64,000 bases of DNA. It comes from Lepidodermella squamata. Lineage: Eukaryota; Animalia; Gastrotricha. The number at the start of each line of letters is the position of its first letter. Position 1 is the stretch's first letter. A model generated the notes under the pieces. It saw only the letters and a program-made list of their open reading frames with translations, was not told the DNA's origin and did not search any database. Location of the stretch: assembly GCA_047495785.1 (NCBI GenBank), contig JBLDXI010000028.1, forward strand, positions 1,798,001-1,862,000. Direction: 5' to 3'. Below are positions 946 to 38,230 of the stretch, in pieces. A program made the translations under genes and the position numbers.

Positions 946-1474
946 CTTTGACAACAGTCATAGAGGCGGGTGGCTTCATCGCTATCATCAAAGTTATGCA
1001 GTCTTCAGCCATTTCATCATAGCCAAGATGCGAGTAAGCGATAGCACACAACTGAAAGGCTCTCAAAGGCCGCATGACAAGTCGCATGACCAGCTTCGAA
1101 TAGATTATCGCCTCTTCGAACCGATTCAGTTGAATACAGCATTGCGAGGCGTTGGTGTAGAAACGAGTGTCTTCGGGCGGCGGCCAATCGGCTGAGTAGA
1201 TCGCAGATTTGTACGTTTCAAGGGCTTCTTCAAATTTTTTAGCTTCAAACAACTTGTTACCCAGGATTCGACGTTCTTCCTGCCGTGCAGCGACTTCGTT
1301 GACTAATTTCTCGCCACCGCCTAGTTCAACTTGAATTTTCCGGTGCAATTGTTCCACATCTTCAAGAGAGTTGAGCTCAGAAAGCAGGTTCAAAGTTGCA
1401 TCGCCGTCCCAATTGGAGGACTTCACCTTTTCGCCGTACTCAAAGTTACCAAACAGGGTCTCGTATAACTTCAT
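946..1474 (-). CDS. TPR-family copy F, exon 1 (rest of gene lies outside the window)
   Basis: ATG at 1474; MKLYETLFGNFEYGEKV...GNKLFEAKKFEEALETYKSAI...YTNASQC; phase-1 donor G|GTATTT after 946; 529 nt, the same length as in copies A and E; acceptor TTCTAG at 1491-1492. Confidence 0.85.
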
Positions 1475-1689
1475 TTTGCATATAAAATACCTAGAAATCG
1501 AGAAATAAGAATAATTACGGGACTCGCCCTAGCTGACAAGCATTTTTCAGCGCTTTTGATTTCGCTGCATGCAAATCCAGGATGTACATGATGCCATAGA
1601 GAATCGAATGGTATGAATTAAATGACCATAAACAAGTGAAAAGAGGGGCTTGGCATCTTTTCTGTATTTGCCAGCAAATAATGGCAAAA

Positions 1690-2150
1690 AGTGTGTTGAC
1701 TTCACGAGGGACGATTCCTGGAATCCTAGATTTTTTAACCAAGTTTTTCCTAAGGATTTGGAATTTTCAAAATTTAGAGCTCTAGGATGCTCCCATCCAC
1801 CTCGGAAGATGAGAAGCTTATTTCATAGGCAGAAAAGCCGAAAAGGCAGAATTTATTGCGCCACGAATTATAAATTGATGCAATAAAAAACACAATTTTT
1901 TCAAGCGCGCCTTTTTTCGAATTGACCCTTTCTCAGTCAAATTCTCTCAGCAACAAGAGCAAGTTCTCAGGTAAATTTTGAAGCTCATTTTCTCAGCAAC
2001 AATGATGAATATCAACCTCTTTTTGATATCGTTCGACTCCTCGTTCACTGATCTTGAAAGTGGCCTAAAAATCCCAAGATGTCAAAAATTTCGCCAAACC
2101 CGCCTTTCACTTGTTAACGGTCAAACATTAAGTATGAAAAAATATCGTGA
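1690..2150. repeat. Interspersed repeat, diverged copy of 34160-34710 (related TCTCAGC-rich scrap near 26280-26340)
   Basis: Shared blocks GGATGCTCCCAT, ATCAACCTCTTTTT, TATCGTTCGACTCCT, AAAATTTCGCCAA and TTTCACTTGT.AACGGTCAAA occur in the same order at both sites. Confidence 0.75.
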
Positions 2151-2512
2151 TCAAGTTACCCCGCATTTAAAATAAAAGAGCGGTAAGTCTTTCAACGGAA
2201 CAAGTTCAGCAAAACAGATTCCTGAGCATACCTTTCATTTATCACTCGTCTTCAATTCCAATATTCGCCGGTCGTCCTTGGTCAGTTCCTCTATAAACTT
2301 CAAACCACGTTTGTGAAAGATTCCTCGAACTTCTGGAATTCGAAATATGCTGACTCACCGGAATTTTTTATTTTTGACTCCCGAGGACGATGAACTAATT
2401 TTTATTCCTTTTATTACGTGATCTCATCTTGGACGAGTTTATCCACTAGCAAGTCAAGCAGATCAATTTTCCTATAATTTGATCTCGTAACTGAATCTGG
2501 ACGGATGGTGTC

Positions 2513-3619
2513 TCATCGAATAGCTCGAAGAACGAAAATGCAAATTAAGCAGAAGGCAATAAGTGCTACCGAACAAGCTATAGCATCCATCAGCCTATTT
2601 AGAGACAGCTTGAAACGTCCGCGAACTACAACGTTGCGATTGAACCATTTGGAGTACTTTTTCGTCATGAAGCACGTTACAAATGCGTACACAGTAATCA
2701 GCAGCGTCAACAGTTCACAAGAGCGCGTGAAATCCGTTAGTAGCATCCGCCCGGGCTTTGCTGGAGTCCTCCGGTTTACTTCAAGCCTCAAAACGGCCAT
2801 AGCGAGGAGAACAGTAATTGCAAAACCTGGTCTCAAGGGCTTAGCTGCGTGAATGGCGATAGAGAGGAACTGCATTGATGTTAATATGATGCAAGGAAGC
2901 ATTAGAAACCGAATGTAAAAGTCGGGTCGTCGTCTGAATGACAATTCAAATCTCGTCTGTACCCCGCCAACAAGAGTTGAACGCGATCCGATATTCACCA
3001 ACTCCCAGTTGTCGAAGTATCTAGCGGGATCGGAGATACCTTTGCGAGTTCCAAAAAACGTGGCATCTTGCAGTCTATTTCCAATACGAAGCCGGATTGA
3101 ACACAATTGATCGTCAAAAGGGAAATTGGTCAAGTCGATTTCACATTGGGAAAAGGCAATACCTCGCAGCGTCATCTGGAAAATCGCAGTTATGTCGTGA
3201 GTTTTTATAAGTAGTTCCTTTTGAAAGAATTTCATAGCAGGATCATTCATAGAATTGTCGTGATATATCAGAGGTGCCCAGTAAAGCGAGGCATTTGGAT
3301 AGAATACGTCTTCAGTATACTTTCTCAGTTGTGTGCAGTTTACAGTCCAAATAAAATAAATTTGAACCAGCAACTTGGAGCTCTGAGCAACATCGTCAAT
3401 TCCGTAGTTGCGCTTGACCACCATGTCGATTTCAATACGCGTAGGGTTACAGGAATGGTCGGAGTAGGCGAAACTGTTGCTAGTGTTGCAGTTAGGATTC
3501 ATAGACTCAACAGATAACTGACTGCAAACTTTCAGCAAACCTAAGCTTCTAAGATTTGCTATCCTCAATAATTGCCAGCTTGAGCCTACGCTCGAGAGCA
3601 TGATGAGTAGGAAAAACAT
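2513..3619 (-). CDS. Cys-loop (pentameric) ligand-gated ion channel subunit, orphan, intronless CDS, ~368 aa
   Basis: Signal-peptide-like start MFFLLIMLSSVG (ATG 3619, acceptor TACCAG 2 nt upstream); loop A YWAPLIY; Cys-loop CEIDLTNFPFDDQLC (C-x13-C with FPFD); pre-M1 RRRPDFYIRFLMLPC; M2 RPGFAITVLLAMAV; M3; short loop; M4. Confidence 0.9.
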   Translation of the reverse strand: MFFLLIMLSSVGSSWQLLRIANLRSLGLLKVCSQLSVESMNPNCNTSNSFAYSDHSCNPTRIEIDMVVKRNYGIDDVAQSSKLLVQIYFIWTVNCTQLRKYTEDVFYPNASLYWAPLIYHDNSMNDPAMKFFQKELLIKTHDITAIFQMTLRGIAFSQCEIDLTNFPFDDQLCSIRLRIGNRLQDATFFGTRKGISDPARYFDNWELVNIGSRSTLVGGVQTRFELSFRRRPDFYIRFLMLPCIILTSMQFLSIAIHAAKPLRPGFAITVLLAMAVLRLEVNRRTPAKPGRMLLTDFTRSCELLTLLITVYAFVTCFMTKKYSKWFNRNVVVRGRFKLSLNRLMDAIACSVALIAFCLICIFVLRAIR

Positions 3620-4325
3620 CCCTGGTATAAAAAATTTCAAAATCAACTGGCTGTAGTTGAGGTAAAAAACGCTGGCAAAGCTCAAATGCGATGTTTGCCA
3701 GGAAATAGAAAATATCACCCATCCGGAATTCAATCATAACACAATAACTGCAGTGGGATTGAGAGGATGTTCAATAACACCACATCTTCGATGAAAACAC
3801 GCTCACCACCTGAGTTTGCCAGCTCAGGTTTTTAGAGCGGAAAAGCAAAGCCTGCACAATGAAAGTATCAAACAGCTATACAGTGGGAAAAAAATTAAAT
3901 CGATTCACATCAACAGAGATTCCAAAAGTATAGGTCACAAAATTGTATTAATTTTAATTTTGATTTAATCTGATTGATTTTGAATAGAAATTTGTATGTT
4001 GATAAATTCACGCTGCCAAGTTGAAGACAATTTTTTCACGATTATTTTGTTAACAGAAAAATTTGATTTGATATTCATTGAACATACTTCTGTGATTACA
4101 TCATCGTACTGATTCAGCTGAATCTAAAGCCGAGAAGCTAAGTATAGGTTTGCCAACTTGAAGATGTTGAGAGCTTCTTCATTCTTCAAACTGACTAAAC
4201 AGGGTGCCGTAAAACTTCATACAACCCGTATAAGATACCAACCTATAAGGAAAAATGTGGAAAATCAATTTATTTTAGTAAAAAACTGATTTCCTCTCAA
4301 AAATGATAGAATCAAACTGCTCATT

Positions 4326-7300
4326 TCAGTTGGATACCATTTCAAGCCTCGGGCAGTTCGGATCGATAGTGAAGATCAGAACTTCGAATTTCTTCGAAAA
4401 TTGAGCGAGCAAATGAATTGTTACGTAAACATTATTGATAATATTAGCGATCAGCATTTGTTCGGGATCATTTCGCAAAAACTGCCTAGGTGGTCGAAAA
4501 TCTTTCGCCAAAAGAACCAGTTCTTCGATGAAATTGCCCTTGGATTCAGTAAAAATCGGTGATTTCTCCCAAAATGAGTCGAGTTTCTTGACGAAGCTCA
4601 AAATTTGCAGATACAACAGCGATATGGTGACAACATCTTTGCGGTAGAAGAAATTCGTCGGTGCGCGTTTGAAATCTCGAATTACGATGGGCAGATTTTG
4701 AGCCGCATAAAACGCGAATGCCGGTCGTTTGGCACAGGCTTCAGCGATTTTGTGGTCTTTTGCCGCTTTTTGCCAGAAATAGCTCGGTGACATGTATTTC
4801 GCAGTGCCTTTATTTTCACGAGATACGAAGTACAGGATATGACCTAAAATTAAAAGGAAAAAGATGAAACTTTGAAAATTGATAGGCGAGTAATTGAAGC
4901 GACATTAGACTCAGCTTGGTTTTATAATGAAAACTAAAGGAAAACTAAATTTCAAGAACAATTGTTTTTTCTGTCGGTATTACAGTAAGTTTGCTAAACC
5001 ACGACACGGTTGCATCTCGGTTACCGTCCAATTGGCAATCGAATGGGCGCATTAAAAAATCGGCTAAATGCCGTAGAAATTCGTTTGAATGCCCGCATCG
5101 ACACGTTGGAAATTCGTCTCAACAATGTAAGAAATATTATTCCGCTAATTGCTCCCCCCTCCTCAGGTATGGTCGCAATTTGTTGCATCTGCTCAATTTT
5201 TAAAAACCAACTAATAATTTCGGGTAAGTAAAAAACTAGTCATAAACGAAATCGACTACATTGCTAATTATTGCGTCTTTAGCAGGTTAAGTTAATTGTT
5301 TTGGTTAGTTCATAGCTAATAAACCAGATTTTTACCGCAGTTCCTGATTTGATTGCCGATGCTGTTAATCTTGACCTGGACCTTGACCTGATATGCAACA
5401 TGGAACTCTAATGCGAACACATTTTCAGATGTGGATCCTCACGAACCTTTCTATACCCAGGGATGTTGCATTCTTCGGGACCCCCTCGCCCACCCCACTA
5501 TGGAAGTTCGATAAAGGCGCTTAAAAAGCAATCGAAAAATGCAAATGCAAAACGTTGGTTACGGAGTCTCGTTTGACATCGGCAGCTTCGTTGAAGTAGT
5601 TTATGATCGAGTGCGAATGCGCGGTAGACAAACAGAAGCTAAGCTGCAATGTTTCTATGATGGAATCCCGCCATGCGCTCGCCAGGCATGGATCTTGATG
5701 AAGCACCTCTGAAATGTATCCCAGAAGTACCAGAAAGGAACCTATGATATTTTTTCTGGGATTTTATCTCAAAATTTTGCTGAATTTCCTACTTTCCTAC
5801 TTCACCCTCGTGCGCCGTACTAAAGGGTAAGTTTGGCTCGTGACGTCAATTTTTTAATTTTAAGGTATGCCCAGGCATTGTGAAATATCTCATGGTCGGA
5901 ATCTGGCACAAGCCGAGTTCCCCTTAGCATGTTGGATCACGTGATCACAGATGGAGCCAGTCAATCGACAGTCGGCTGAACGGTCGTGACTCAACACGAC
6001 AAGTCGCGCCCAAGGACGATGAGAGGTGCGTCGTCTAGCATGCGCAGGACTACAGGAAGTTTCTCCTGGGCTACGGCCCAATTCGTCTTGCAAAAGTACC
6101 TGACACCAGCGCAAGCGATATTTAATTTTTAGAGATTATGCTTACTGTCGTCGATTCTTGTGACTAATTTTGATACTTAACGCAAAAACGATTGGTGACA
6201 AAACTGGTAATACTTGTTGGAATAGCTCTGAAACTTGATCGTTGATTTTTTACTTGCTAGACCCTGAAGACGGCTAAATAAAAGCCGAAACATGTCGGAA
6301 TAGGCGACTGGATTCGTTTTATAGTCAATAGCATGATATCGCTATACCACCAATACGATACCTTATTACGACTAATAATTCTTGCCCGTTACCTCATCCG
6401 TCTCGCCGGTTGCTCACCTAACGGCTGCAATGCAAATTCTCGTCTACCAAAGCCACCACGTAGGTGCTGGTTGGCTACACCGATGCCGACAAGAGTCGAT
6501 TGCCCCATCGATTGCAACGGCTATAGAATCGTCGTCTAACGCTGATGACAATCCGAGGGGGCTGTGGGCCACGGCTATGTAGACTACACAGCACGTCTCG
6601 ATCAGGGGGAAGAAGTTCCGCGTAAGAGGCCGCTTAGCCAATGGGCTAGTGAATCGCCGAGTCGATACCAAACTTTGTTGGACGAAGTAGTGTCCCTGAG
6701 AAAGCAACTGCATTCTAAAAGTGACGAGCCTATCGATGAGCCCCGTGCTAACATGAGCACCAAGTCTGCAGCTAACCGCGACATCGGCGACAACAACAGC
6801 GCCGCCACCACCTTCAAGCCTGCGTCGAAGTCCCGCCCCACCAGCGATCAGCCTGGCACCGCCACCAGCCAAAAGCCTTCGGCGAAGACTCGCGTCACCG
6901 GCGACAAGACCAGCGTCGATACCGGTGTATACATCAGCGCTAATAAGCCAGGATCCATGTCTCGCGCCAACACCAGCAGCGCTAGCACCGGCGTCAAGAT
7001 CGGAGTCGCGCCCCGCGCCAATACGGGCGGCAACACCGGCACCAAGAACGGCGGCAACATCACCTCGACGCCCCGCACCAACACTAACGTCAAGATAGCG
7101 GTGACGCCACGCGCCAATACGGACGGCAACACGGGCGCCAAGACCGGCGGCAACATCACCTCGACGCCCCGCACCAATGCCAGCCAAAGCGAAAACCTAA
7201 CGTCATCAAAAACTGTCTCGTCTCGTCCATGTGTAACTAGCAGCCAGAGATGATCATCAATGATCATCTTACGTCACAAAACTGACTGAGACGTTTTACC

Positions 7301-10300
7301 TAACTTTGTTTTTAGGAAAAACAACGTACAGGGTGCACCGCTCACCCACTTTTATTTTTCATGCCTCTTCAAAGATCATCCATTTTTTCCCCCAATTTTG
7401 CAATCAGGGTAATATTTCTCCGCTTTTTCACAAACGTAGTCGTTAGCGACACAATTTTTACCATCTTACCTTTCATTTTTTTCAAGATACTTGAAGCGGC
7501 AATATTTGTTTTTCTCATTATTTCGACCAGTTTTTAACTACGACGGTTTTAACATGTCTCAGTTTTTTTTACCAATTTATCCACTCCACGTTTCACCATT
7601 TTTTTTAATTAAGATGTTTTTGAACTGTCGCTGATAGCATAAAATTTTACATAATAACACAAAAAACAAAAACGAATTTGAATTGGCTTATATAAGCCTA
7701 AATGTCTAATTTGTAGTTACATCCTTCTTAAATTGTGCTCTATAGTTCTATTTCAGCCTATACATGGGCTACATTCGATGCTGGCTACATTCGATGCTGG
7801 CTACAATCGATTTGGGAGAGTTAACCGGTTCAGGTTGGTTGAACTGATTATAGCGAATAATATATCAATTTATATCAATAAATAAGCTAATTCGTCTCCT
7901 TTGCCAGGACTTATGTTATCACCGAACTTGGTCGCTTCCTCAGTTGAGCTTCATTTCCACTCGCATTCACTTTTACCATATACCTGACTCTTCAACACCT
8001 CACAAGGACATTGTCATCTGCAGTAACTTTATGAATTTTACTAATAATTTCTAGCTCTGATATTCGTCGAAATTAACGGACCGGCTCTCACCAAGTTGCA
8101 TCGAGCCAAATTTTTCAAATCGTGGGAATCGCAGTTCAGGAAGTTCTCAAAAATGGCTGTAGGCGCCTGTTTATTCTGAAATTGAGCTTGAAAAGGTTGA
8201 CATGTTTGGTGATCGTCTATTTTCTGGTCACGTTCCTCGGTAATTTTTTTGAGAAAGCAAACTATTTTTTTCAAACTATTGATATTATATTTATCAATCA
8301 TCAAATTATAGAAAGCATAATTAAGAATTGACACTTTCCGGCAAAGGAACATAAAAAATCCACTTACTTAGATTTGAAGCGATGATGATCGCATTTCCGA
8401 GCTGAGCTTCACTGGCACGGCGCCATGGTTCCAAAAACCATTCAGGACAATCGGCCGCAAGACTGCCCAGTCTCATCATAACCATAGGAAACGGATTGCC
8501 ATCTTCTATCACCAACTTGGTCGAAGAACAAAACCCCGCTATCCAAGTATATATCGAAAACGTTGGGTCACAAATCGGAAAATGACCTTTGACAAAGCGG
8601 TCACGCATCGCTGGGCTGTCGTCAAAGGCTAAGAAAAGGGCTAAATAGTGCTCGAAAATTTGTCGATGCATCGGAGAAAGGGTTAACAAGCGGATCGTAT
8701 CACGGCCCACGATCTGCTTGCCCAGTTCACAGATAAATTCAATGAAGCCTGGTATGGTGACTAAATCACGCATCGCCTGATCGCGTAGGTCGATATTGGT
8801 GGTATCTCGCGGCACCACATACAGAATAATTCGGAAAACCAAAAGCATAGCGGCAGTCTCGAAGAATGACAGGCTTGAAAAAACAATATCCTGCGAGAAA
8901 AGCCGCTTGACAAGCGGAATTTGTTTGAAAATTCGCAGGATCCCAGCTTGGTAGAGAGGTCGGTCGATGTTGCCCTCGTCCTTAACAGCGAAGGAAACCA
9001 GATTGTCCAGGGTGAAGAGGAATTTCATCTCTTCCTTCGAACCGCTTGGCATTGGCAAATTTCCGAGCGATATCAGGCTTTTCAGTTCCGATTTCATGCT
9101 GTCGACATCGAACGAACGGGTGCGGCCCAAGGGACGTTGACCCACAATCTCGTCGCATTTATCCATCGTTTCTATAATAATGAAATATACATTTTTAAAA
9201 GCGCAGAGTTGAAACATGGCAATATTTATAAATTATTTTGAAACCAAATGTGGGAGTCCGACAAGGTGACCCACTTTATTCACCACTTTTGTTCTCGATT
9301 TTTATAAACTTCAGAGACAGTCAGAAGTTCCGCACGGTGGGCTGGACGGAGAAACGTAGTCAAAACAGAGCACGTGCGATTTTTTGGTTTATTTCTCGCA
9401 CTCGATGGGCATCAGTTGTGCTGGCGTAAAGGAGGACACATTTAAAAGTTTCAAAAATTTGAATAAATACATGAGATGAGTTTCACGCCGAACTTGAAGA
9501 AACGCAAAATAGATCATCTTTCACAAGTTGTGATTAGTGAATTTGCTATATTCTCAACTTTCAATGAGCCTATATTTTTTAGCCTGTAAGAAGTCCGATT
9601 GAAACTAGGTCGTGGATTAACAAGTCCAAGCTGCAACGTCTTGAAAAAGGAAAGGTGAATATTGCCCGATTCGTTGAGTCAGGTCCAGGCATACAATACG
9701 GTCAATACAGGCTTAAAACTCAATTGAACATATAGAAACGACGTATATAACTTTTTCCAAGAGGCTTTACGTAGGTTTACGTACAACTTGACGGCGACCT
9801 ACAAGAATCCCTTAAAACTTGATTACATAAATTTGTTTTCCAGTTTTGAATTATAATTGAACTGGACAACCTTCCCGCAAAAAGAAGGTAAACGTAAATG
9901 TTTACTCTGATTAACTATCAATTAAAAGAAAGGTGCTAACATTTACCTTGAATAAAAGATTTCTTAGCAGGTATCCTCATTTGTTCCATCACGCCTACGA
10001 AATCTTCCGCCATTTCATCAAATCCAAGGTGGGTCAGAGCGATGGCGGCTAGTTGGCACGCTCTATGTGGACTCTCAGCAAAATGAAGGACCAACTTGGA
10101 GTAGACGACCGCCTCTTCGAACCTTTGCAGCTGAATACAGCACAGCGAAGCATTTGTGTAAAAGCGAGTATCTTCAGGCGGTGGCCAATCAGCGGAACAA
10201 ATCGCTGACGTGTACGTTTCAAGGGCATCTTCATACTGCTCAGTTTCATACAATTTGTTGCCTTTCAATCGAAGCTCTTCTTGCCGAGCTGCAATTTCTT

Positions 10301-10475
10301 CTACCAATTTTACACCACCGCTAACTTCGATTCGAATTGCCTGATGCAATTTTCGCACATCTTCGACAGATTTCAGGCCAGCGAGCAGGTTCAGCGTTTC
10401 TTCGCCGTCCCAGTTTGAAGTTGTCACTTTTTCGCCATACTCAAATTTACCAAATAGCGTTTCGAATAGCTTCAT
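4326..10475 (-). CDS. TPR-family copy E, 616 aa; exons 9947-10475, 8368-9171, 4326-4843
   Basis: Exons of 529+804+518 nt join in frame with GT-AG sites (introns 775 and 3524 nt, both phase 1); collinear with the near-continuous copy B. Confidence 0.85.
6257..6303 (+). ncRNA. Minimal type I hammerhead ribozyme-like motif (Penelope-like element type)
   Basis: CTGAAGA (6264-6270), C, stem II GGCT-AAATAAA-AGCC, GAAA, palindromic ACATGT stem III, cleavage site UC (6295-6296); imperfect stem I CTAGACC/GGAATAG. Confidence 0.6.
6380..7253 (+). mobile_element. GC-rich low-complexity ORF remnant (229 aa open at 6564-7253) with a 96-bp tandem repeat, probably the 5' part of a retroelement
   Basis: Thr/Asn/Gly-rich; 32-aa unit VKIxVxPRANTxGNTGxKxGGNITSTPRTN repeated (units start 6992 and 7088); lies just downstream of the hammerhead motif inside intron 2 of copy E; no catalytic motif visible. 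Confidence 0.4.
7767..7811. repeat. 16-bp tandem repeat (GGCTACATTCGATGCT x~2.8)
   Basis: Directly visible; resembles subterminal repeats of DNA-transposon ends. Confidence 0.8.
9241..9312 (+). mobile_element. LINE RT scrap (GVRQGDPLYSPLLFSIFIN)
   Basis: Matches the GVRQG-x-x-LSPLLF RT motif; only ~70 bp. Confidence 0.75.
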
Positions 10476-11715
10476 TTTTCATTCGAAATAAACAAATACC
10501 TAATAATACATCACATGAAATCATGAGCCCCCGGAAACAAGGTTTTATTCTCAACCAAATAAATCAGACGAAGAATAAGATTATAGTTTTGCACAGAATT
10601 TGGTAACTTTCAAGTTACCAGTCCAAAACTGAAGAAAGCTTCTTCAATCAGAGCCTTGATCGTTTGATAATGTTTGCATTATCATTGCGGTAAAAGATTG
10701 ACCGGTTCGCGTTGGAAGTCTCTCGCACGACGATAATGAGTAGACAGGTTTTTTGCCAGAACAAAAACCAGGCTTCAGGCTACAGTGCGAGAACCAAAAT
10801 ACAGGAGATTACCTAAAATAATCAAAATAACAATTATTTTCGTGGAAAGAAATATCCCTTTTCCCGCAGATAACCATTTTAGTAGCAGAAACACACTTTT
10901 CCTGCAGTAAAAACTGGTGTCAATTAATCAATTTTCTAGCAATTCCAGCTCGATGAACGCTATGAAAGCGTGCGTATAAATCGATTCGCAGGCCAGCGAC
11001 CTCAATCGCAGCCGCAACCTTGCTTGCCCAACTTGGGCGATTTGCCGAAGGCGCCTGTTATCCGAAGCACTGCAACAATCGCAGTTGTTAATGGCACTGT
11101 TGACCGTCCTCCAGTTCCGAAGCTGGTGTTCCGTTTGATTGCTCAGCCTGCTGGGAAGCCGACAGGTTAGTGAGTGCTGTTTCCATAATCTATGTTTTTT
11201 CTACATGTAGTTCTTATGGATCCGGTTTATGATTTACGCACTTTTTAATCAATGATAAATGTTTTCGGAATGTTTATGTATTGATAGCGTTTTCATCTTT
11301 CACAGTATTTACATATTGTGGTCTTCGAATGAGTTCTCATCTATTACAGTAGTTTACAAACTTCAACTGTCATGGAATCTCGCCTCTTATCGCGATTCCA
11401 CGCTTTCTCCATGGCCTCGTCATCTACGTGATCTGCTAACTTTCGAGACTTCGCCCAGCCGCTCCAGGCGCTGTAGAACGCCTACGTACCGGTCGAACTT
11501 CGCTGGCAGAGATCGGCTCTGTTCAAATCGCTCCTGAGCGGTTCTCAACCATCCAGTCGATGCTCGAAAATCGGATTGCGGTACCAGCCGTCTCCGAAAT
11601 CCAACAAGCGTTGCTCGCAGAAGACGATCGGCTCGGCTAGTCGCCCAGGCTCCGCTCCACCGGGTCAAGCCCATCACGAAGCAGCTGCCCTATTGGATGT
11701 GGACCAAAATCGCAA

Positions 11716-11769
11716 CAAAATAGCGTACTAGGGCCACTATTATTTACGCTGTACATCAACGAGATGGCC
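11716..11769 (+). mobile_element. LINE (CR1/L2/Jockey-like) RT scrap QNSVLGPLLFTLYINEMA
   Basis: Matches the QGSVLGPLLFxLYIND RT motif. Confidence 0.7.
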
Positions 11770-11845
11770 CCAATACCTCGTTTTGCTAAATTAATTCAGT
11801 TTGCCGACTTCGAGTCGAGCTCAGTTGCTCCCTAGGTTGAATAAA

Positions 11846-11893
11846 ATCACGTGTTTCAATTGTGGAAAGACAAATAATGAAAGAGCTGAATGC
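11846..11893 (+). mobile_element. Degenerate CCHC zinc-knuckle scrap (gag/ORF1)
   Basis: ITCFNCGKTNNERAEC = C-x2-C-x4-(H>N)-x4-C. Confidence 0.5.
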
Positions 11894-19222: not shown

Positions 19223-19331
19223 TTTCAAACGCCTAAAAAATAACTATTTTAATGTTCAATTTTATTTGAAATATTAGGAAAATATTTTGTTTTTAAATTT
19301 CACCACATATAAAAGTTTGCATGATAACAAA

Positions 19332-27148: not shown

Positions 27149-27470
27149 TATTTAATCGTAAAAAACCGAGACCTAACACGAATAAAAAATCAACCTTAAA
27201 AAAGAGCAAGCATAGTAGAAAAGAAAGAAAAGCAACGCGTCCACCAACACATTTTATAACCGTCTGCGCTATAAATGAACGACGTGGTCATTTTCTATTT
27301 CTCGCAACGCACGCGCCGAGCAGCCTCTCATAAAAGCTACGCACCGCTAGGTCAAAGTAATAATGATCGAGGTCAGTGCGTTGCTTTCCGCTGTGCCATT
27401 GATAGAAAGACAATCAGTTGCGTAATAAAACAGATTTTTCACCATCCCGTGATTATTTTATCGTCCAAAT

Positions 27471-29384
27471 TTAACCACGATTCAGAAAAAATGCATTGCA
27501 ATGAGCATTTGACTCCATGTCTTTCCTTAGCTTTTTCGAATTATTCGCGAAACCAGTCAGAATAACGATGACATTTCGCCGCAATTTAGCCACAAAATCA
27601 GGATCGCTTTTCGCAAGAAAATAGCCGGGCGATTTGATTGTTTGATCGAGTAGTATCAATTCTTCGAGGTAGCTACCCTCGTAACCCGAGTAACAAGGCG
27701 GTGATACCCAAAATTCCTCCAGATGATCGATTTTCACCACAATTCTCGCGAGACTTTGTAGCAAATTATCGACCTCACGTCTATTGATGAAAATTCGCGG
27801 TTCTTTTCTGAATTCCCGGATGACATGACGCAAGTTATCAGAGAGGTAAAGCGCGAATGAGGCTTGAGCAGAGCATGATTCGGCTATTTTCTTATCCCGA
27901 GTTACAGTTTCGAAGAATGGAGTCAGAGAAAAATGTGATCGAAAAGCGTTTTGACGGGCTAGGATGTTGACTATTTGACCTAGAAAAAACGATGAAAACT
28001 TCAAATTGATGCTCGGAAATTTATACAAACCGAGATTTGAAGCGATAGAAATGGCATTTCCTATTCCTTCTTTTGACGCCTTTTTCCTCCACGGCCCGAA
28101 GTACCAATCCGGGCATTTTTCAGCCGTATTAACGAGACACTCCAAAGTCGCAAGAAATAGCTGGTTTTTATCATTTTTCAGATCAATCGGTAAATAACAA
28201 AACGCAGCCATGCATAAATAGATGCCGAAAGTCGGGTCACATAGCGGCAAATGGCCTTCGACAAATCGTTCACGCATCGTTGGGCTTTCAAATAAACACA
28301 GCAGTAATTTCACGAAATTCTCGAAAATAAATCGATGAATTGGAGAAGTAACGACAAGTCGAAAATTTTCACGTCGAACAACTTGCCGGGCTAATTCGCA
28401 GAAAAATTCGAGAAAATTCGGAGTGGTAACCAAGTCGCGCATCGCTTGATCTTTGAGATTCACATTCTCAACTTTCTGCGGAATCATGTGAGTTGCGATT
28501 TCTAAAACTAACTGCATAACCATCGCCTCGAAGAAATTCAGTTTCGAGAAGTCAAATTCAGGCGAAAATAGTCGTTTAATCACCGGAATTTGTTTGAAAA
28601 TTCGCATAAAACCAGCGTCAAACAACGGTCGACATCCATTTTCGCATTGATGCTCGTGCTGGACCAGTTCATACAGGGTGAATAGGAAAATTTCCTCGTT
28701 GATCGTTGAATTTCCAATCGAAATAAGCCGTTTAATCGAATTTTTAAGATGTTCACAATTTTTGCCATCGTGACAACTGTGGCAGTCTTGCCGAGTCGGG
28801 AAATTAGGCGGTCGAGCTTTTCGAATTTTCAGCATAATTGCCATGACTCGAACAACGAACCCAGGATGGGCTTGTGGGTTGATTTTCATGGTCATAATGT
28901 GTCCGTAATGCTCAGCCATGTGATCATAGCCGAGATGCGTGAAACCCCACATGCAAAACTGACATGCTCGGTACGAATTCGGATCGATTTGAAGCGCCAA
29001 TTTCGAGTAGAGAATCGCCTCTTCATATCGCTTCAATTGAATAAGACACTGAGAAGAATTTGTGTAGAAACGAGTATCGCTAGGTGGCGGCCAATCGGGG
29101 GAGTAAATCGCCGATTTGTACATTTCCAACGCGCCTTCTAAATCGCCGGATTCGTACAATTCGTTGCCTTCCAATCGAATTTGTTCCTGTTTATCGGCGA
29201 TATCTTTCATAGCTGATTCGCCATCGCTTAAATCCGTTCGAATTTCTTGATGTAGCTTTTTTATTTCCTCGACAGATTTCAGCCCGGATAGTAATTTCAA
29301 GATTCCGGTATCGTTGAAAGTATTCGAAGATGAAATTGGGTCACCATACTGAATTTTACCGAAAAATGCCTCAAACGCGTTCAT
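27471..29384 (-). CDS. TPR-family copy B, 620 aa; exons 28031-29384 and 27471-27979 (no intron 1)
   Basis: The single 640-aa ORF contains a 51-nt in-frame GT-AG intron (27980-28030) at the conserved ASNLG position; ATG at 29384. Confidence 0.9.
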   Translation of the reverse strand: MNAFEAFFGKIQYGDPISSSNTFNDTGILKLLSGLKSVEEIKKLHQEIRTDLSDGESAMKDIADKQEQIRLEGNELYESGDLEGALEMYKSAIYSPDWPPPSDTRFYTNSSQCLIQLKRYEEAILYSKLALQIDPNSYRACQFCMWGFTHLGYDHMAEHYGHIMTMKINPQAHPGFVVRVMAIMLKIRKARPPNFPTRQDCHSCHDGKNCEHLKNSIKRLISIGNSTINEEIFLFTLYELVQHEHQCENGCRPLFDAGFMRIFKQIPVIKRLFSPEFDFSKLNFFEAMVMQLVLEIATHMIPQKVENVNLKDQAMRDLVTTPNFLEFFCELARQVVRRENFRLVVTSPIHRFIFENFVKLLLCLFESPTMRERFVEGHLPLCDPTFGIYLCMAAFCYLPIDLKNDKNQLFLATLECLVNTAEKCPDWYFGPWRKKASKEGIGNAISIASNLGLYKFPSINLKFSSFFLGQIVNILARQNAFRSHFSLTPFFETVTRDKKIAESCSAQASFALYLSDNLRHVIREFRKEPRIFINRREVDNLLQSLARIVVKIDHLEEFWVSPPCYSGYEGSYLEELILLDQTIKSPGYFLAKSDPDFVAKLRRNVIVILTGFANNSKKLRKDMESNAHCNAFFLNRG

Positions 29385-30849
29385 TTTTCGCAAATTTAAA
29401 ATTGTCTAAAATTTTAAGGGTAAATAATTCAAAAATAAAGTTAAAAATTCTAAATGATCGTTAAATCGAAATAAAACAAGGCAGCAGAAAAATGCTGGAA
29501 AACAAAACCATAAATTCCTCCGAAATAAAATTAAAAAAAAAAATAAAAATCAAATTGAGATCTCTCTTTGTTCCGTTACGACGTTAATAAAAAATTTCGA
29601 ATATAAAAAAAACACCATTTTATGGCTCAAAATTTCGAAGCATCAGCGCATGCTTCAATCAAATTTCAGAAAATCAAACTCGAAGTATCATATTACACAG
29701 AGATTTCATTAGGTCGTTTCCAAGCTGAATCGATAGAATTGATGTCACTTTCGAATTTTCTCGAAATTTTCGAAAAACTGCACAGCACGTGACTGAGGTT
29801 GTACTGCAGTGAACGAGCGTATCCTGGGTCGTTATTCGGCAGCCATCCAGATTTGAGTGACTTGGCAAACATCGCCAGATCTTCGATGAAACTGCCCTTC
29901 AAGCCGTTGTAACACGGTGGAGATTCCCAGCATGGATCCAACCTATTCAATCTGGCAGTGACATGTGCGAGAAGTAGGACAAAATCATTAGCGTCTTTCC
30001 GGATAAGAAAATCGTGGGAGAGTCGGCGTAGATCGCGCATCACGATCGATAGATTGCGAGAAACGTAAAACGCAAAGCATGGATTGTTGCCGCAAGCTTC
30101 GGCAATTGTCTTATCCCCAGTAGCACCCTGCCAGAATAACGTTGGAGTGATATAGATTATAGATTTCATGTTCTTGGCGGGCAATGAAGTAAATGAGATG
30201 CCCTAAAATGGAAGAGAAAGCTTATCAGAATGTATTATGTTGAGAGATATTCAGATCTGAAACCCAATTCAAATCAGAAATTCACAAATTCGAAAATTGG
30301 GTGCAGTACAATGTTTAAAAAATTTCAATTCCTTCGAACTTCATTGCTTCATGCCATATCCACTTTTCCAATTTTAAAATTGATCAATCGACATCATTGG
30401 ATCTACCAGAGTTATTTTCAAACCCCAGAAACCTTCTTAAACATATTGGCAACCAAATTCGACGCCGGTTAGCCTTCTTGAATTTTTTCGATACCTATTA
30501 ATTCTCAACTGAAACAAGGACGAAAGGTCGCCTAAGAATACCAGCTACTGAGCCGATAAAACGCCATTCAACCAATAGAGATTTTTGTATTCAATGTAAT
30601 TAATCTATTAAGAATTGATTTTCATAGGCTAATTTGTTGGAGAATCGGTTAAATCCCAAGCTCAGATATGCAAGCATCCTCGAATATCTCAAACAGTTAA
30701 CGGATCCAGAAAGGAATTTACAGCCCATTCACCATGGAACGCCGGTGCGATTGGTAATGGAATTAGTTTATACGGAAGAAGAATTGCAAGGATTTGTTTT
30801 CACTGCAAACGGTGCAACAACAATACTGTTTACCCTAACGGTAACTATG

Positions 30850-31015
30850 AAACCCGAACCGATGAAATGAGGCGAGAGGCGGCTACACGAAACTGGATTC
30901 TCTCAAAAGGCCTAAACGAGTGGGCTTGCGTTCTCGAAATTCCCGGATTCGGCCCAACCAAGCAGTGCCCGGTTGAGCCCATGCATAACCTCTTCCTTAG
31001 GGTGGTGAGGTACCC
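30850..31015 (+). mobile_element. CACTA/EnSpm-type (CMC) transposase fragment
   Basis: WACVLEIPGFGPTKQCPVEPMHNLFLRVVRY resembles LxxPGFDxxxxxPxDxMHxxxLGVxK; flanked by further decayed coding scraps (30634-31550). Confidence 0.65.
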
Positions 31016-32060
31016 GCTGCTCAATATTTGATGCAACTCTGCCTCGCCGAAACATGTGAAGAATTTTGCTCGGATAAATCAGCACATTAATCGATCCGCC
31101 TCTTTCAGCCCTGGTCATTCCTTTTACGGATGCAGTTAACGCAGTTGTGGTGATCGCATTTGCCGAAGAATTTAAACTGGCGCCTTTCCGGGAGACTGGA
31201 CTGGTCTTTAAGGAGCTTGGCAAAGGTGTCAGACAAGTCATTAAATCATTTGCGGAGCGCGACGGCGAATTCAACATTTTTACTACCCTCATCTACAAGC
31301 GGACGATGTATAACGAGCCCGTGGACAAAGAAGAACGGCTGCTAGCAGGACGTTCTGGTCGACGCGCGCGAATCGTTGGCAAGATGTGCAAGGACTGGCC
31401 CCTGTCGCCAATCGAGGGCGATCCTTATTTCAAAGACGATGACAACACTGCCTCGAACATTCGGCGTGTGGCTTTGCTCATTCAATCTTCAATCTTCAAT
31501 ATTCATTTGTTGATGTTGACCCCGAGACGAATGTCTTCGAACTTTTAACGCTCGACAAGTTTAGGAAGAAGTTGATTTTGAACCCTTCTGTTCATTTAGA
31601 TGTCTCTTGGACCCCCTCGGCTGAGTACCATTAGGTTTATTCCTTTTTATAATTCGACTTTGATTAGCCGAATTGTCTACTGATCTCTCAAAAGATTGAA
31701 AGAGCTCTTTTCAAACCAATGTTTTTGCAACCAGCCGAATTTAATCAATTTTCGGCTGGTATTGATGAGTGAAATTGCCGCTTTCCAAAGTTTTCAAGGG
31801 CCATCTAATTTACTAATCGACTATATTTCCGAGAACAACATGAATGAACCCGTCCTCGCCGCGCCACCGGGTATAAACGGCCGCCAATTGCAACGTCTCT
31901 ACCAGGGCTACAACTGGCAGCGGTTGTGGCGCTCGCTCAGCCGGTCTGTGAACCAGCATGGTTTAGACTTAAAGTCTGGCAAGGTACCTGGCCAACCTGT
32001 TGCCCGTCCGCCAGCGCGCCGCTGATGAGGCCGAAGAATGAAATATGTCCTTGAGATCTG

Positions 32061-32264
32061 TGTGACCGGCGGTCACTTGGTTGGCACGCGCCCGTTGCTG
32101 CACCCCTGCCAAGGGACCACCTGTCACATCCCGCCAACCCAGGGTCGCGTGCCCCTGCTGTATATAAACTGGCCCTATGTGGCCCTGAAGATCAGTTCTC
32201 TTACGAATAAAGCTAGTCTAGTTGCTTAAACCGGGGACCGTCACACTGGCACCGAGACCCGGAA
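32061..32264 (+). mobile_element. LTR retrotransposon 5' LTR (185 bp) plus primer-binding site, truncated
   Basis: TGTGAC...GTCACA termini (32061-32245), internal TATATAAA and AATAAA, followed by TGGCACCGAGACCCGGAA (14/18 match to the complement of a tRNA-Phe 3' end, TGGTGCCGAAACCCGGGA). Confidence 0.7.
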
Positions 32265-32274
32265 GTTGGTTGTA

Positions 32275-33042
32275 CAGTATATTTTCAATATAGTGAACGC
32301 TGTTCGTGCCATCAAGTTTGTTCACTATAACGAAATTCCACTAGTGAACGACTAGTTGCAAATAAAGGAGGGAGAAAAAAATTCTTCTACTACTACAGTA
32401 TATTATCGTTATAGTGATAGCCGTTTATAGTGAACTATCGCTGCAGTGAACGATTTTGCTGGCACGCGGCTCAAAGTGGCCTATTTACCTTATAATAGCT
32501 ATCGGTATTGTGAACGACACATATAGTGAACAATCGTCATTGTAAACGCTTTTTGCGGCGCATGCGCCATATAAAACACGTGTTTAGCGAGCGATATAAT
32601 GAACGAGGCTAAATTTTGAAAACAAATTCTTCAAAAACGATTTCAAAAACTTGATGAACCGTAAAAAGACCTGAAAATCGTTCTCAAGCTTCTAAAATTG
32701 GTGAATCTCGAGCGTAGATTAAGGGTCTTAAGCGCAATTTCGCACGGCTCAAATGGGCCAGCAGTTGTCAGGTTTCGAGGCCCACCCCTTGAAAAAGCTT
32801 CAAGGAGCGGGCCCCGAGCTGTTGGCGACTATCAGAACTGTTCAAACGACTATTACTGATTACTTTTCGCTTAAGAATCAGATTTTTCTAGTATACATAC
32901 GCCGCCGATGCATTTAGCAGTAATATTCGGAGCTTTGAAGCCATATAAGCGTTTTCTTTTTCAACTATCACTATAGTGGAATTTCGTTATAGTGAACAAA
33001 CTTGATGGCACGAACAGCGTTCACTATATTGAAAATATACTG
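32275..33042. mobile_element. pogo/Tigger-like (Tc1/mariner superfamily) non-autonomous element with TA flanks
   Basis: TA|CAGTATATT...AATATACTG|TA; 71-bp perfect inverted repeat 32273-32343 / 32974-33044; a second TA|CAGTATATT end at 32396; TATAGTGAAC subrepeats. Confidence 0.8.
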
Positions 33043-34732
33043 TATTTTCCGACCAATTCCGACTCGTCAACATTCGATTTTAAAAGTATCAGTTTGAAAT
33101 TTGAAATCTTGTGAATTCCTTAATTTCAGAATATTTTAGTAGTATTCAAGGAACAATAGGTTTGCATTTGCAGTATTTTCAAATCAAAATATTTACCAAG
33201 ATTCGAAGCAATCGTAATAGCGTTGCCAAGTTCGGCTTTCGACGCCTTCCGCCACGGTTCCAAGTACCATTTCGAGCACTCATCCGTCAAATTACCCAGC
33301 CTCGCCAAAGCCATGCCAAACGGCCCACCAGGTCTTACGTCCAACCTTGGGGACGTACAGAACCCTGTCAGCCAGATGTAGACCCCAAACGAAGGGTCAC
33401 ATAAGGGGTAGTGCCCCTTAACAAAGCGTTCCCGCATGACAGGGCTGTCATCTAACGGAATCATCAGGGCGACAAACCGCTTGAAAATGAATCGATGTAT
33501 CGGCGACTGGGTCAAAAGTCGCATCACATCTCGCCTCGTGAACTGCCGGCCCAATTCACACATGAATTCGACGAAATTCGGGGTGGTAACAAGATCGCGC
33601 ATGGCCTGGTCTCGAAGGTCCAGTTCCTCGGTATCGTTCGGTACAAGGTGAATCAGCAGTTTGAAAACCAGTTGCATTACCACGGTCTCGAAAAATGACA
33701 TTTTCATGAAATTTACATCGGGTGAAAACAGCCGTTTGACCAGTGGTATTTGCTTGAAAATTCGCATAAGGCCGGCATTATACAACGGCCGAGTGCCACC
33801 TGCGCCGCTTTTCACGTAGAGGCATAACTCGTAAATGGTGAACAGGAAGGTCATTTCAGCCTTCGATCCGGCGGCTATGGGTAAACTGCCGATTGATATC
33901 AGCCGTTTTAGGGTGCTTTTCATTTGATCATTATCGTAAGACCATTCGCGACCTGGCTGGCGTTGGTGGCGGATCGTGCTGATGAGGGCAGCAAGTTCTA
34001 AATTAAAAAATAAGTAATACTCAAATAAATTTGAGGGGCGCAATTTTGGATAAGTCCGCCTACAATTAACAGCAGTCAAGTCCCGCAAAAAATAACCAAA
34101 ATGACCGTTTAAACGAGTGAAAAGTGAGGTTTGGCGAACTTTTTCTATTTTCCAGCAAATCTAAAAAAATTCTTATAATCCAAGATTTTGTCACTTTTTT
34201 CTTGAGGATTTTTAATTTAAAAATTTCAGACCTCTGGGATGCTCCCATGCTCCTCAAAATGCAGTAAACACAAGAGTGTCGCACTCAAGTAGTATTGATT
34301 CAGGTTGATATGGAGACACTAGCTCGATTACACCAAAATTATTACCATCAGAATTTATTACGCGGGGAATTATTGAAGCATCAATAACTCAATTTTTTTA
34401 GTCGAATTTTTTCGAAATTTGCATTTTTCACTGGTAAGCTTTCAAGCCCGATTTCTCAGCGATTTCTCAGCGACCCTGATAATCAACCTCTTTTTATTTA
34501 TTTCATTGTTTTCTTATCTCATATTATTTTTTTTATATATTTTTCAGTTTCATGTCAACCTAAGGACAATAAACTTTGAATTTAGTATCGTTCGACTCCT
34601 TGTTCATCAATCTTTCAAGTGGCACAAAATTCTCACGAAGATCAAAATTTCGCCAAGCCCCACTTTTCACTTGTAAACGGTCAAATATAGAATTGTCGCC
34701 AAAAATATAGGTCGAGTCGCTATGACAATTCG

Positions 34733-36024
34733 ATATTTTACGGTATAACATTCGTAAATCGTTCATATCTGAACTCGCCGCACTCGATTTACTCATCGCA
34801 ACTCGCCTCCGGCTCGTTCGTGTCCCCTATTTTCCGCTAAAAATGTTCCGCTAAATTAATTCCGCTAAAAAAACTTCCGCGTTTTTACACTTCCGCCAAT
34901 GGATTTTCCGCCAGTGCATTTCCGCTTACTTCACCTTTCCGCTTACGTAGACTTCCGCTGGCAGCAGTTCCGCCTCTTTTTAATTTCAGCTAATATTTTA
35001 TTCCGCTGGCAATCAACATACAAGTAACTTGTTATATTTCAGTTTCGTATTTGTTATCACCAAATGATTGGTTTTTATTATAATGAAAGATCAGAAAATT
35101 GAAGCCAGTGATCAATCAACTGGTGTTTGGCAATTAAATTTCCGCAAAAATAATTTGGGCTTCGCAAAACATAACTCAAAATTTAAGGTTTGAAAAAATT
35201 CGAACATGATAAATAGCAAATTGCGATATAGATCAATCGGGCTCATTTGAAGAGTCATCGGAGGAACACGAATCCGAGCTCGGTTGATACTCTGAGCCGT
35301 CATCGACTTCTATGGCGGTGCCGGAGCCTTGTGCAGGGTTTCCGGGGAGACCTTCGACTGGTCTTTAGAGCTCTTGAACAAAATCGGCGAAAACTTGACG
35401 GCGAGAATTATAGGATAACAATAATTTGATGTCGCATCAATTAATTTGTTAATTAACAATTTGTTAAGAGAATTTGTTGAAGCTCATTTTGAACTATTGG
35501 AAAATTTGAAAAAAATTAAAAAAATTTCGATTACAAATAACGACTTCGAAATTTCCAGTCCTAGCCCTTTATAAGTTAAGAGAAAATATGTCAGCGGAAA
35601 ATTATTGTAGCGGAAAAACATTGGCGGAAATATCATTGAGCGGAAATATCACTTGGCGGAAACTCGAATAGCGGAAATTGTTTTAGCGGAAACGCCGTGG
35701 CGGAAAAGCATTGGCGGAAAAGAGGGAGAACCCTGGCAAATACTATCGAAACTATATTTGTATGGTATGACATGAGTAAAACGTTTATATCTGTACGGAG
35801 CCGCCCGAGATTTACGAGTCGTAACGAGCCGGTTCTCCCTCTTTTCCGCCAATGCTTTTCCGCCACGGCGTTTCCGCTAAAACAATTTCCGCTATTCGAG
35901 TTTCCGCCAAGTGATATTTCCGCTCAATGATATTTCCGACTCGTTCCGGCTCGTTACGACTCGTAAATCTCGGGCGGCTCCGTACAGATATAAACGTTTT
36001 ACTCATGTCATACCATACAAATAT
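34733..36024. repeat. Imperfect palindromic element (arms 34733-34818 and 35948-36024) split by an insertion at its apex
   Basis: The arms are reverse complements apart from regularly spaced TC/TC mismatches and some divergence. Confidence 0.7.
34819..35732. mobile_element. Non-autonomous DNA transposon (MULE/foldback-like) with TTCCGC-subrepeat TIRs and an 8-10 bp target-site duplication
   Basis: Left end CGTGTCCCCTATTTTCCGC, right end GCGGAAAAGAGGGAGAACC; ~15-bp periodic TTCCGC/GCGGAA motifs; GGCTCGTT at 34811-34818 and again at the reconstructed right junction (35948-35955). Confidence 0.75.
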
Positions 36025-38230
36025 AGTTTCGATAGTATTTGCCAGGGCATGTGCAAAAAAATGTAACTGGCACAATAATAATATTGAATCAGGCGAAACT
36101 AGTACTTGGGAATAGTACAACCCAATCGCGAATTGATCGTAGAGAATGGGTTGGGTTTCCAAACAAAATTGAGCGAGGGAGCAATTAAGACGGAAATAAA
36201 TTAGATCTTGCAATTTCTCAATTTTTCTTCGCGTGCGTCTCAAATAATCCGAAACAGTGTTCAGACTTTTGCCCACTGGACCACGCTCAGTGGCAGGCAC
36301 GAAAATTATTCCTCATCCTTCCATATTCCATATTCCATATTATAAAAATACTCCGTTGAGTAAAGGGGTAGGGGTATAGTTAATCGGCGTACAATTTTCA
36401 AACCTTATGAAGCCAGCCAGGTTTAGGAATTTTTTTGAGTTAACAATTCACAATTTTTTTGCATTTCCATCTTGTTTTCTATTCCCCTAAGCCAACAGTT
36501 CGTATTTTCATTAGTGCCAATTTTGAATAATCTGGAATCTGTCCGAAAGGAAGCTAGAAGGAGACCTAAAATTCCTTCCTATTAAGAAAAACACCAGCTT
36601 CGAGATGCTTATTTTCGCATTTACAGAGACGAATCGCCGAAAAATCGGCTCGCTCCGCTCGCATTATATTTCGTTAGGTTATTTTTTGTTTTCTTTTTTT
36701 TTAGCAATATAAAAGACCTTACTCCATAGAACAGCATCGAAGACTTTAGGCTTTTAGCTTCAGGGAATTATATCAGTGATTTTTTAATCGCGTATCAACT
36801 AGTTTCGCGAGCTTCGAACCAGTGGACCAGTGGCTTAGCGAAAAAATCAAAAAATCACAATTTATTCCAAATTCGCGTACAATTTTTTGCAATTTCTTTC
36901 CAGTGGCAGACACTTTCTAGTCACGAAAAAAAATCGGAGAGCTAATCTGAAATTGGGCAAACGCGTGTTAAATTTCCAAAATTGAAAAATTATGGATTTA
37001 CAGGTAAAATTTCACTTCGGTTTCCAATTTCCGGAGAGCAAAACTGTTTTCATCAGACATCAGACATATTCTTTTATCAGACATATTCAGACCAATGTCT
37101 TCTTTTATCAGACATATGTCTTATTTCCACCAGAAATGTCAAATTTTAGGTTGTCGGATAAAATGAAGACAAAGGTACGTCTGACGAAAAAATTCATAAA
37201 CAAATTTGTAGAACGAAAGCTATATTTAACTTTTGAAATACATATTATTGCCCAACCTTACGATACGTTGGGAAATTTAAATTGCGAGGCAGTTGTAATT
37301 AAGGTTTGGAGTAAATGCTGTTAAAATTGAGTCGCACTTCGGATGAAATCATTCACGTGCCGGATGACTAATTTACTTACCTTTGAGAAAATCTGGGGTT
37401 ACAGGAGGCATGGCGTACCGAATGGCTCTTAGATATTTCTCAGCAATTTCATCGTAGCCCAAATGCGTGAAAGCCATGGCGCACAACTGGCACGCCCGGG
37501 CTGAATTTTTGTCGATTTGAAACGCCAACTTCGAGTAGACGGCCGCTTCCTCGAACTGTTGCAGCCGAATCAAACACAGCGCGGCATTTGTGTAGAAACG
37601 AGTGTCGCTGGGCGGCGGCCAGTCGCTCGAACAAATCGCCGATTTGTATGTCTCAAAGGCGCCGAGGAAATCTTCAGCTTCGTACAATTTGTTGCCCTCA
37701 AGACGCAGCTTTTCTTGCTTATCGGCGATTTCTTTTAGGGAGGATTCACCACCGCTCAGTTCGGTTCGAATATTCTTGTGTAGTTGCGTAACATCGCTGA
37801 CTGATTTGATACCGATTAACAAATTTAGTGTTTCCGATACGTCTGCATTCGGCGAAGAAATTCTATCACCGTACTCGAATTTACCGAACAAAGCCTCGAA
37901 GGTTTTCATGATAATATCTACAAAACACACGAGGAAAAAGATGAAAGTGAAAAAATTTAGAACCTATTATTTTTGTTTGACAGGGCAAACAGAAAACCAC
38001 AGCCCTAAATAGCAGCTAATGATGGCGTTTGTCCATCTACAGTAAAGAGCCTTTCGACCTTATTTTATTATAACGGAAGTTTTCGTCTATTGCTCTAAAC
38101 GTAATTTTTTTTATGAATGAAGTGCGCGCCTGAACGGCACGTTTAGGGGCACGCGTTATTATTGCTTTGACCTCATTGCCGATTCGCCGTATATTTTCGG
38201 CGAGCAATATGGATATTCGGCGAGGGTCAC

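Follow-up and report, generated by a model that had tools for sequence, protein, structure and literature searches.

Spliced leader (SL) trans-splicing and operons are patchily distributed across animals, and the origin of operons is debated. In the operons of tunicates (Ciona, Oikopleura) and in the SL1-type operons of Caenorhabditis elegans, the acceptor lies almost at the poly(A) site of the upstream gene, and no room is left for a promoter between the genes. SL RNA genes linked to 5S ribosomal RNA (rRNA) genes are found in nematodes, some flatworms, euglenozoans, and others. A full-text literature search yielded no report of SL trans-splicing or operons in gastrotrichs, and the genome paper of the gastrotrich Lepidodermella squamata (PMC11660948) makes no mention of either. 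Here, we describe a tandem array of genes for a TPR-domain protein in this species, lying on the minus strand of a window of 64,000 nucleotides (assembly GCA_047495785.1, contig JBLDXI010000028.1, here C28, positions 1,798,001 to 1,862,000; positions given below without a contig are those of the window). An earlier note on this DNA had proposed that the array of about 37 kb might be one or a few polycistronic units resolved by SL trans-splicing. The analysis narrows this proposal to two neighbouring copies, C and D, as a candidate operon within an array whose members all carry a splice acceptor before the start codon.

The TPR gene array, its acceptors and its spacers

Family members were located by tblastn with the naturally intronless copy B (29384-27471, 637 codons) as the query, and the exons of the other copies were treated one by one. 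Six members were found in the window, all on its minus strand, and a seventh, copy G, past the window start. Copies A, C, D, E, F, and G have two phase-1 introns in common, at conserved positions and with GT..AG borders, and in C, D, and E every exon is open. The genes, remnants, acceptors, and spacer elements of the array are the following.

Copy A, 29693 to 37909, minus strand: exons 37909-37381, 33997-33197, and 30202-29693; introns of 3383 and 2994 nt.
Copy B, 27471 to 29384, minus strand: the sole intronless copy in the array, 637 codons, intact in the window.
Copy C, 19332 to 27148, minus strand: exons 27148-26617, 23355-22555, and 19834-19332; introns of 3261 and 2720 nt.
Copy D, 14457 to 19222, minus strand: exons 19222-18688, 18637-17837, and 14983-14457; introns of 50 and 2853 nt.
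Copy E, 4326 to 10475, minus strand: exons 10475-9947, 9171-8368, and 4843-4326; introns of 775 and 3524 nt.
Copy F, exon 1, 1474-946 (feature 946 to 1493), minus strand: the remainder of the gene lies before the window start.
psi1, 14141 to 14416, minus strand: TAG acceptor 14416-14414, then a degenerate exon-1 remnant 14388-14141.
psi2 with the E-to-psi2 junction, 4179 to 4325, minus strand: AATAAA 4274-4269, TAG acceptor 4245-4243, ATG at 4220.
Exon-3 remnant with the E acceptor, 10500 to 10762, minus strand: frameshifted remnant at about 10762-10681, AATAAA 10549-10544, TAG 10502-10500.
A acceptor, 37918 to 37920, minus strand: TAG, 8 nt before the ATG; weak by position weight matrix (PWM); AG-free zone of 44 nt.
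B acceptor, 29406 to 29408, minus strand: TAG, 21 nt before the ATG and 287 nt past the stop of A; PWM score 9.8.
C acceptor, 27173 to 27175, minus strand: TAG, 24 nt before the ATG and 298 nt past the stop of B.
D acceptor, 19235-19233, minus strand: TAG, then a 10-nt leader.
F acceptor, 1493-1491, minus strand: TAG before exon 1 (1474-946).
C-to-D junction, 19223 to 19331, minus strand: 3' untranslated region (UTR) of C with AATAAA 19266-19261, TAG 19235-19233, 10-nt leader.
B-to-C spacer block, 27253 to 27420, minus strand: unique, its end formed by a TATAAA 80 nt before the C acceptor.

The acceptors were read directly on the minus strand at nine sites, those of seven genes and two stubs. 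Each is a T-rich tract that ends in TAG, 1-24 nt before the ATG. The G of the acceptor falls at 37918 in A, 29406 in B, 27173 in C, 19233 in D, 10500 in E, 4243 in psi2, 1491 in F, and 14414 in psi1, and the coordinates of the earlier note, psi1 included, were all correct. Its statement that an acceptor precedes every copy likewise held at nine of nine sites, and T is also found at position -3 in all nine. In the 10 nt before position -3, the T count averages 5.57 at the seven gene starts vs 2.82 in the background, which was taken as the nearest upstream AG of 4390 ATGs (resampling P ~1e-5, for paralogs that are not fully independent). The AG-free zone has a mean of 29 nt at the gene starts and a median of 11 nt in the background (P = 0.07). 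The cis acceptors of the family are of the same T-rich type, with TAG in 11 of 12, and a PWM built from these 12 sites, which is small and overfitted, places the acceptors of B (9.8) and D (9.5) within the cis range of 8.9-18.4 and those of C, F, and psi2 at intermediate scores.

The stretches between acceptor and start codon, that is the genomic leaders, measure 8, 21, 24, 10, 24, 22, and 16 nt in A, B, C, D, E, psi2, and F, respectively. In-frame stops occur in the leaders of C and E, and these stretches are therefore UTR, as had been suggested from the same two stops. As the flanks of the paralogs are otherwise unalignable and the ATG follows at anything from 1 to 24 nt, the retained site suggests that a 3' splice site is selected for. 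Each start codon thus has an unpaired 3' splice site upstream, above chance. Such an acceptor indicates trans-splicing at most, and not an operon.

The whole array recurs collinear on another contig, C33, at 184-271 kb, as found when C33:184000-271000 was compared with positions 1-38000 of the window together with C28:1758001-1798000. The blocks are mostly 87-97% identical at the nucleotide level, and synonymous divergence (dS) between the two array copies amounts to 0.10-0.19. The ratio of nonsynonymous to synonymous divergence (dN/dS) between C28 and C33 is 0.05-0.15 in six genes (C 0.05, D 0.06, E 0.11, F 0.15). These low values in all six genes imply that the family is functional and under selection, and copies C and D are under strong purifying selection. 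Inactivation is reciprocal, with A frameshifted on C28 alone (a 7-nt insertion shifts the frame of exon 3 in the window, and the counterpart on C33 is intact) and B hit by a 1-nt indel on C33 alone. The two contigs might represent very divergent haplotypes of a parthenogen or, alternatively, recent segmental duplicates. A second array of the family, on contigs C7 and C32, has the same two-copy pairing.

The distance between neighbours, counted from the stop codon to the first exon base, differs strongly along the array.

A to B: 287 nt, vs 501 nt on C33 (stop to ATG 308 vs 522 nt); no canonical AATAAA.
B to C: 298 nt; no canonical AATAAA; conserved block with TATAAA.
C to D: 99 nt; acceptor 28 nt past an AATAAA; gap-free and of equal length on C33.
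D to psi1: 43 nt; into a dead stub.
D to E: about 4 kb; pseudogene debris throughout.
E to psi2: 83 nt; acceptor 26 nt past an AATAAA; into a dead stub.
E to F: about 2.8 kb; an unrelated Cys-loop gene and pseudogene debris within.

The distances of 97, 81, and 41 nt given in the earlier note for C to D, E to psi2, and D to psi1 are the same gaps (99, 83, and 43 nt) minus the AG, and the three AATAAA motifs were indeed found 28, 26, and 44 nt before the splice point at 19266-19261, 4274-4269, and 10549-10544. The third of these belongs to a relic: ahead of E, a frameshifted exon-3 remnant is followed by an AATAAA 44 nt before the E acceptor, and this remnant records that a copy since lost was once tightly joined to E. 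The assertion that several copies abut the preceding 3' end therefore applies to C to D as the one intact pair, and the other tight junctions either enter psi1 or psi2 or leave the dead exon-3 remnant. Accordingly, operon-type tight spacing between poly(A) signal and acceptor is seen among intact pairs at C to D alone and not at A to B, B to C, D to E, or E to F. The three relics (D to psi1, lost copy to E, and E to psi2) indicate that the ancestral duplication unit already had tight spacing.

At C to D, the distance from stop to ATG is 109 nt in both array copies without any gap, and C33 retains both the AATAAA and the acceptor. This spacer offers a single alternative cis donor, GTGAAA, past the C stop, which reads GGCGCA on C33; the weak donor from which a rival 5' exon had been considered is thus lost in the second copy. 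For the 99 nt of C to D, the argument that promoter, first exon, and cis intron would not fit holds; it is not borne out for A to B and B to C, with 287 and 298 nt. In A to B, the spacer lengths of the two array copies are 214 nt apart. The B-to-C spacer contains a block with a TATA-like motif, the core of which is ~96% conserved between the array copies, and this block is a candidate promoter for C as judged from its sequence. It was also considered as a dispersed repeat, which was rejected as it occurs here and in the C33 counterpart alone and nowhere else in the genome. Past the stop of D, no AATAAA or ATTAAA is found within 450 nt (14457-14000, minus strand), yet D is under purifying selection.

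The remnants show how the family decays. The exon-1 remnant of psi1 (14388-14141) is recognised by tblastn with E = 1e-9 and carries deletions and stops. psi2 is a true exon-1 remnant with a stop 13 codons after the ATG at 4220, and it is 99% identical to the copy on C33. In our best reading, the locus is a tandem array that evolves by birth and death of copies, and the gene family is lineage-specific. Two peculiarities of intron content were observed in addition. Intron 1 of D (18638-18687, minus strand) has just 50 nt, and the same intron spans 0.8-3.4 kb in the paralogs. Copy B is devoid of both conserved phase-1 introns, and the more distant paralogs on C7 and C32 are likewise single long open reading frames (ORFs); either B lost its introns via a cDNA or the other copies gained them.

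Predicted SL RNA genes and leader traces in the genome

The 121.2-Mb assembly (151 contigs) was searched for SL RNA genes, as the earlier note had proposed, and two were found beside 5S in the ribosomal DNA (rDNA) spacer. The rDNA units are 8460 bp long, and in the intergenic spacer of the unit analysed (L004) a 5S gene lies on the minus strand. Two paralogous predicted SL RNA genes lie on the same strand as 5S inside this 18S-28S intergenic spacer. Their leaders and the dispersed element copies that carry such leaders are listed here.

L004 4699-4668, minus strand: SL leader of 32 nt.
L004 5168-5136, minus strand: SL leader of 33 nt; the first 11 bases of the two leaders are identical, and neither contains an ATG.
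C7:4435440, C4:1680423, C4:1484634, C2:2856350, and C23:253301: copies L037-L041 of one retroelement.

The leaders end at the GT donors AAG|GTATGA and GAG|GTTAGT, each of which pairs into stem-loop 1. Single-stranded Sm-like sites (AAUUUGA and AUUUUAG) and then a 3' hairpin follow, and the stems of this hairpin carry compensatory changes between the two paralogs. By sequence, the putative genes have the canonical build of SL RNA genes with leader, donor, Sm-like site, and stem-loops. A search of the whole genome with the Rfam SL1 family gave no match and was uninformative by its own control, and a comparison of the rDNA spacer with Rfam identified no family beyond 5S. The spacer (L004 4091-6243) also contains a 32-nt element twice (4466-4497 and 4991-5022, 91% alike), of which one copy lies 25 nt upstream of 5S on the same strand and might be a shared promoter element.

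Each leader is present in more than 500 copies in the genome. Twenty dispersed copies are joined to many unrelated sequences exactly past the last leader base; some of these junctions retain the GT, and there a retroelement may instead have inserted into an SL gene. More telling is the retroelement mentioned above (L037-L041), which carries either SL-B, a 5'-truncated SL-B, or SL-A at the identical base, and in which SL-A is also joined at an alternative site 37 nt upstream. These variants are best explained by reverse transcription of trans-spliced RNAs, and they suggest that both leaders can be used interchangeably on the same RNA. The SL RNA genes and the retroelement with either leader make trans-splicing plausible in L. 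squamata. Another candidate trace was discarded, namely that copy B is a retrocopy retaining a leader remnant: when the two leaders are aligned locally to the 80 nt preceding the ATG of B, the scores are 17-19, which does not exceed those of other copies (21 for D).

Transcription of the array

We give about an even chance to the reading that this is a trans-spliced, decaying array in which C and D are transcribed as one precursor and the other copies are separate trans-spliced units. According to this reading, each copy would present a T-rich tract ending in UAG before its AUG, a 3' splice site without a paired donor, and a leader of 32-33 nt from the SL RNA genes of the rDNA spacer would most likely be spliced on at this UAG. 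In the ancestral unit the acceptor would have been located within ~100 nt of the preceding stop and 26-44 nt past an AAUAAA, and between intact, selected genes this tight layout would persist at C to D alone. C and D are probably transcribed as one precursor, which may start at the conserved TATA-bearing block ahead of C; polyadenylation of C, coupled with trans-splicing of D, would then cut this precursor apart. With their wider or interrupted spacers, the remaining copies more likely form transcription units of their own, likewise trans-spliced. Strong purifying selection on both C and D together with their tight junction makes the pair a good candidate for a two-gene operon. We infer leader use at the acceptors and co-transcription of C and D from sequence features, and for the operon part these features are the distances between the genes.

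Purifying selection on D implies that its pre-mRNA starts somewhere upstream of the 99-nt gap, which is mostly 3' UTR of C, and that start could be either the promoter of C, as in an operon, or a promoter inside C. Several observations weigh against the operon-containing reading. It is possible that D has its promoter within the last intron or exon of C. By PWM, the acceptors of A and E are at background level, no better than those of ~30% of random ATGs, and E and F have, within the presumed leader, an upstream ATG that is out of frame and 7 nt away from the start. No canonical AATAAA follows the stops of A, B, and D. Genome-wide, the pattern AATAAA N15-40 TTTTTAG N1-25 ATG is not enriched (658 occurrences vs 768 in a reversed control), a pattern that is, however, too crude. 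Furthermore, fast-evolving lineage-specific paralogs are atypical as cargo of nematode operons.

A less likely alternative is that all copies are monocistronic with promoters of their own, that the acceptor is the trans-splice site of a short outron, and that D is transcribed from a promoter within the last intron or exon of C. Any trans-spliced gene, operonic or not, should have an upstream acceptor, and an AG near the ATG is also found in the Cys-loop gene and in three divergent receptor genes next to the array (see below). The spacers of A to B and B to C (287 and 298 nt) would fit compact promoters, the B-to-C spacer holds the unique conserved TATA-like block, and the A-to-B spacer is 214 nt different between the array copies. 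Separate promoters throughout are made less likely by the C-to-D junction, where just 99 nt, mostly 3' UTR of C, separate the genes and the AATAAA lies 28 nt before the acceptor, by the tight layout, which is ancestral to the array, and by D, which, being under purifying selection, has to be expressed from somewhere upstream. For the acceptors themselves, one might think of cis sites of 5' UTR introns with distant non-coding first exons, or of chance T-rich AGs, and the weak PWM scores of A and E would agree with this. We regard it as improbable, since no such exon has room before D and the sole candidate donor there, GTGAAA, is not kept on C33, all nine sites exceed the background by far in T-richness and in T at -3, and SL RNA genes are present in the genome.

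At the other extreme stands one long polycistronic unit that would extend over the entire array or, at a minimum, run from A past D. Between 37.9 kb and the window start, all copies share one strand with the Cys-loop gene, every copy has an acceptor, and intercistronic regions in nematodes reach up to a few hundred nt. Such a unit is hard to reconcile with gaps of 4 kb at D to E and 2.8 kb at E to F, both filled with pseudogene debris, with opposite-strand ORFs between F and G, with the different length of the A-to-B spacer in the two array copies, with a candidate promoter block ahead of C, and with the frameshifts of A in this contig and of B in the other copy. A single 37-kb polycistron, including such a longer run from A onwards, is therefore unlikely, with only a slim chance in our view, and this part of the earlier proposal was not upheld given the ~4 kb of D to E, the ~2.8 kb of E to F with its Cys-loop gene, and the non-conserved length of A to B.

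Returning to the C-D operon within a decaying array, the locus can be viewed as an operon-type junction within a tandem-duplication unit, kept between two selected paralogs and decaying elsewhere in the array. Somewhat short of an even chance, it may be that C and D, and perhaps formerly more of the array, form an SL-resolved operon that was born by tandem duplication of a promoter-less unit. If true, a new copy would be expressed at once by read-through and trans-splicing, and the locus would be a caught-in-the-act case of operon birth from paralogs via trans-splicing in Gastrotricha. The array makes it testable whether trans-splicing lets promoter-less duplicates survive.

Encoded protein, neighbouring genes and known systems

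In copy B, residues ~60-145 form a TPR domain that is nearest to the TPRs of Hsp70/Hsp90 co-chaperones. Among the Pfam models, TPR_8 reaches 26.7 bits vs a cut-off of 25.7, and other TPR models stay under their cut-offs. In PDB, the TPR domains of the Hsp70/Hsp90 co-chaperones STI1, SGT2, and CNS1 match the same residues, and these matches are weak (E = 1e-5 to 1e-3). For the remaining ~450 residues of copy B, a helical region, no family was matched, and an Atlas look-up of residues 180-637 gave sub-threshold ARM/HEAT-like leads alone. A word search of a protein collection with the 640-residue ORF of B was blank. A scan of 1.84 billion representatives returned generic TPR matches and P0070, a protein from an ENA metagenome, with no member of the array and no other full-length relative. 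P0070 is 25% identical to the array protein and 60% identical to the second, more distant paralog array on C7 and C32; the latter value indicates that it stems from a related organism and not from L. squamata.

Two groups of unrelated genes lie within and next to the array.

2513 to 3624, minus strand, ATG at 3619: Cys-loop channel gene, unrelated to the TPR family, inside the E-to-F gap.
40371-48769, plus strand: three tandem intronless paralogs of 777-789 amino acids with an N-terminal ANF-receptor ligand-binding domain and a multi-pass membrane region.

The Cys-loop gene (2513-3619) has its own strong T-rich CAG acceptor, TTTTTTATACCAG, 2 nt before the ATG. Intronless minimal Cys-loop genes on the same strand as the array were observed three times, once in the window and twice between F and G (C28 ~1,777,400-1,783,500), an interval with further genes that include opposite-strand ORFs. 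The three ANF-receptor-type paralogs diverge from copy A, and each has a CAG 9-22 nt before its ATG. ShK domains are also among the coded domains. A Pfam search of ten intronic ORFs gave no matches, nor did Rfam and tRNA scans of the window.

Compared with the operons of tunicates and the SL1-type operons of C. elegans, the C-to-D junction of L. squamata is similar in the lack of promoter room between the genes and in the position of the acceptor close to the upstream poly(A) signal, the AATAAA lying 28 nt before the D acceptor. It differs in its cargo, which consists of fast-evolving tandem paralogs with kb-sized introns and not of unrelated housekeeping genes, and in that co-transcription and leader addition are predicted features here. 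The SL2-type operons of C. elegans resemble the locus in the arrangement on one strand, an intercistronic region of ~100 nt, and the presence of two leaders in the genome. They differ in that in L. squamata either leader occurs at the same retroelement site, which favours interchangeable use, with no sign of a leader reserved for downstream genes. With the 5S-linked SL RNA genes of other groups, the predicted genes share the short leader, the GU donor, the Sm-like site, the 3' hairpin, and the position beside 5S, whereas here both the SL genes and 5S are located within the 18S-28S rDNA intergenic spacer.

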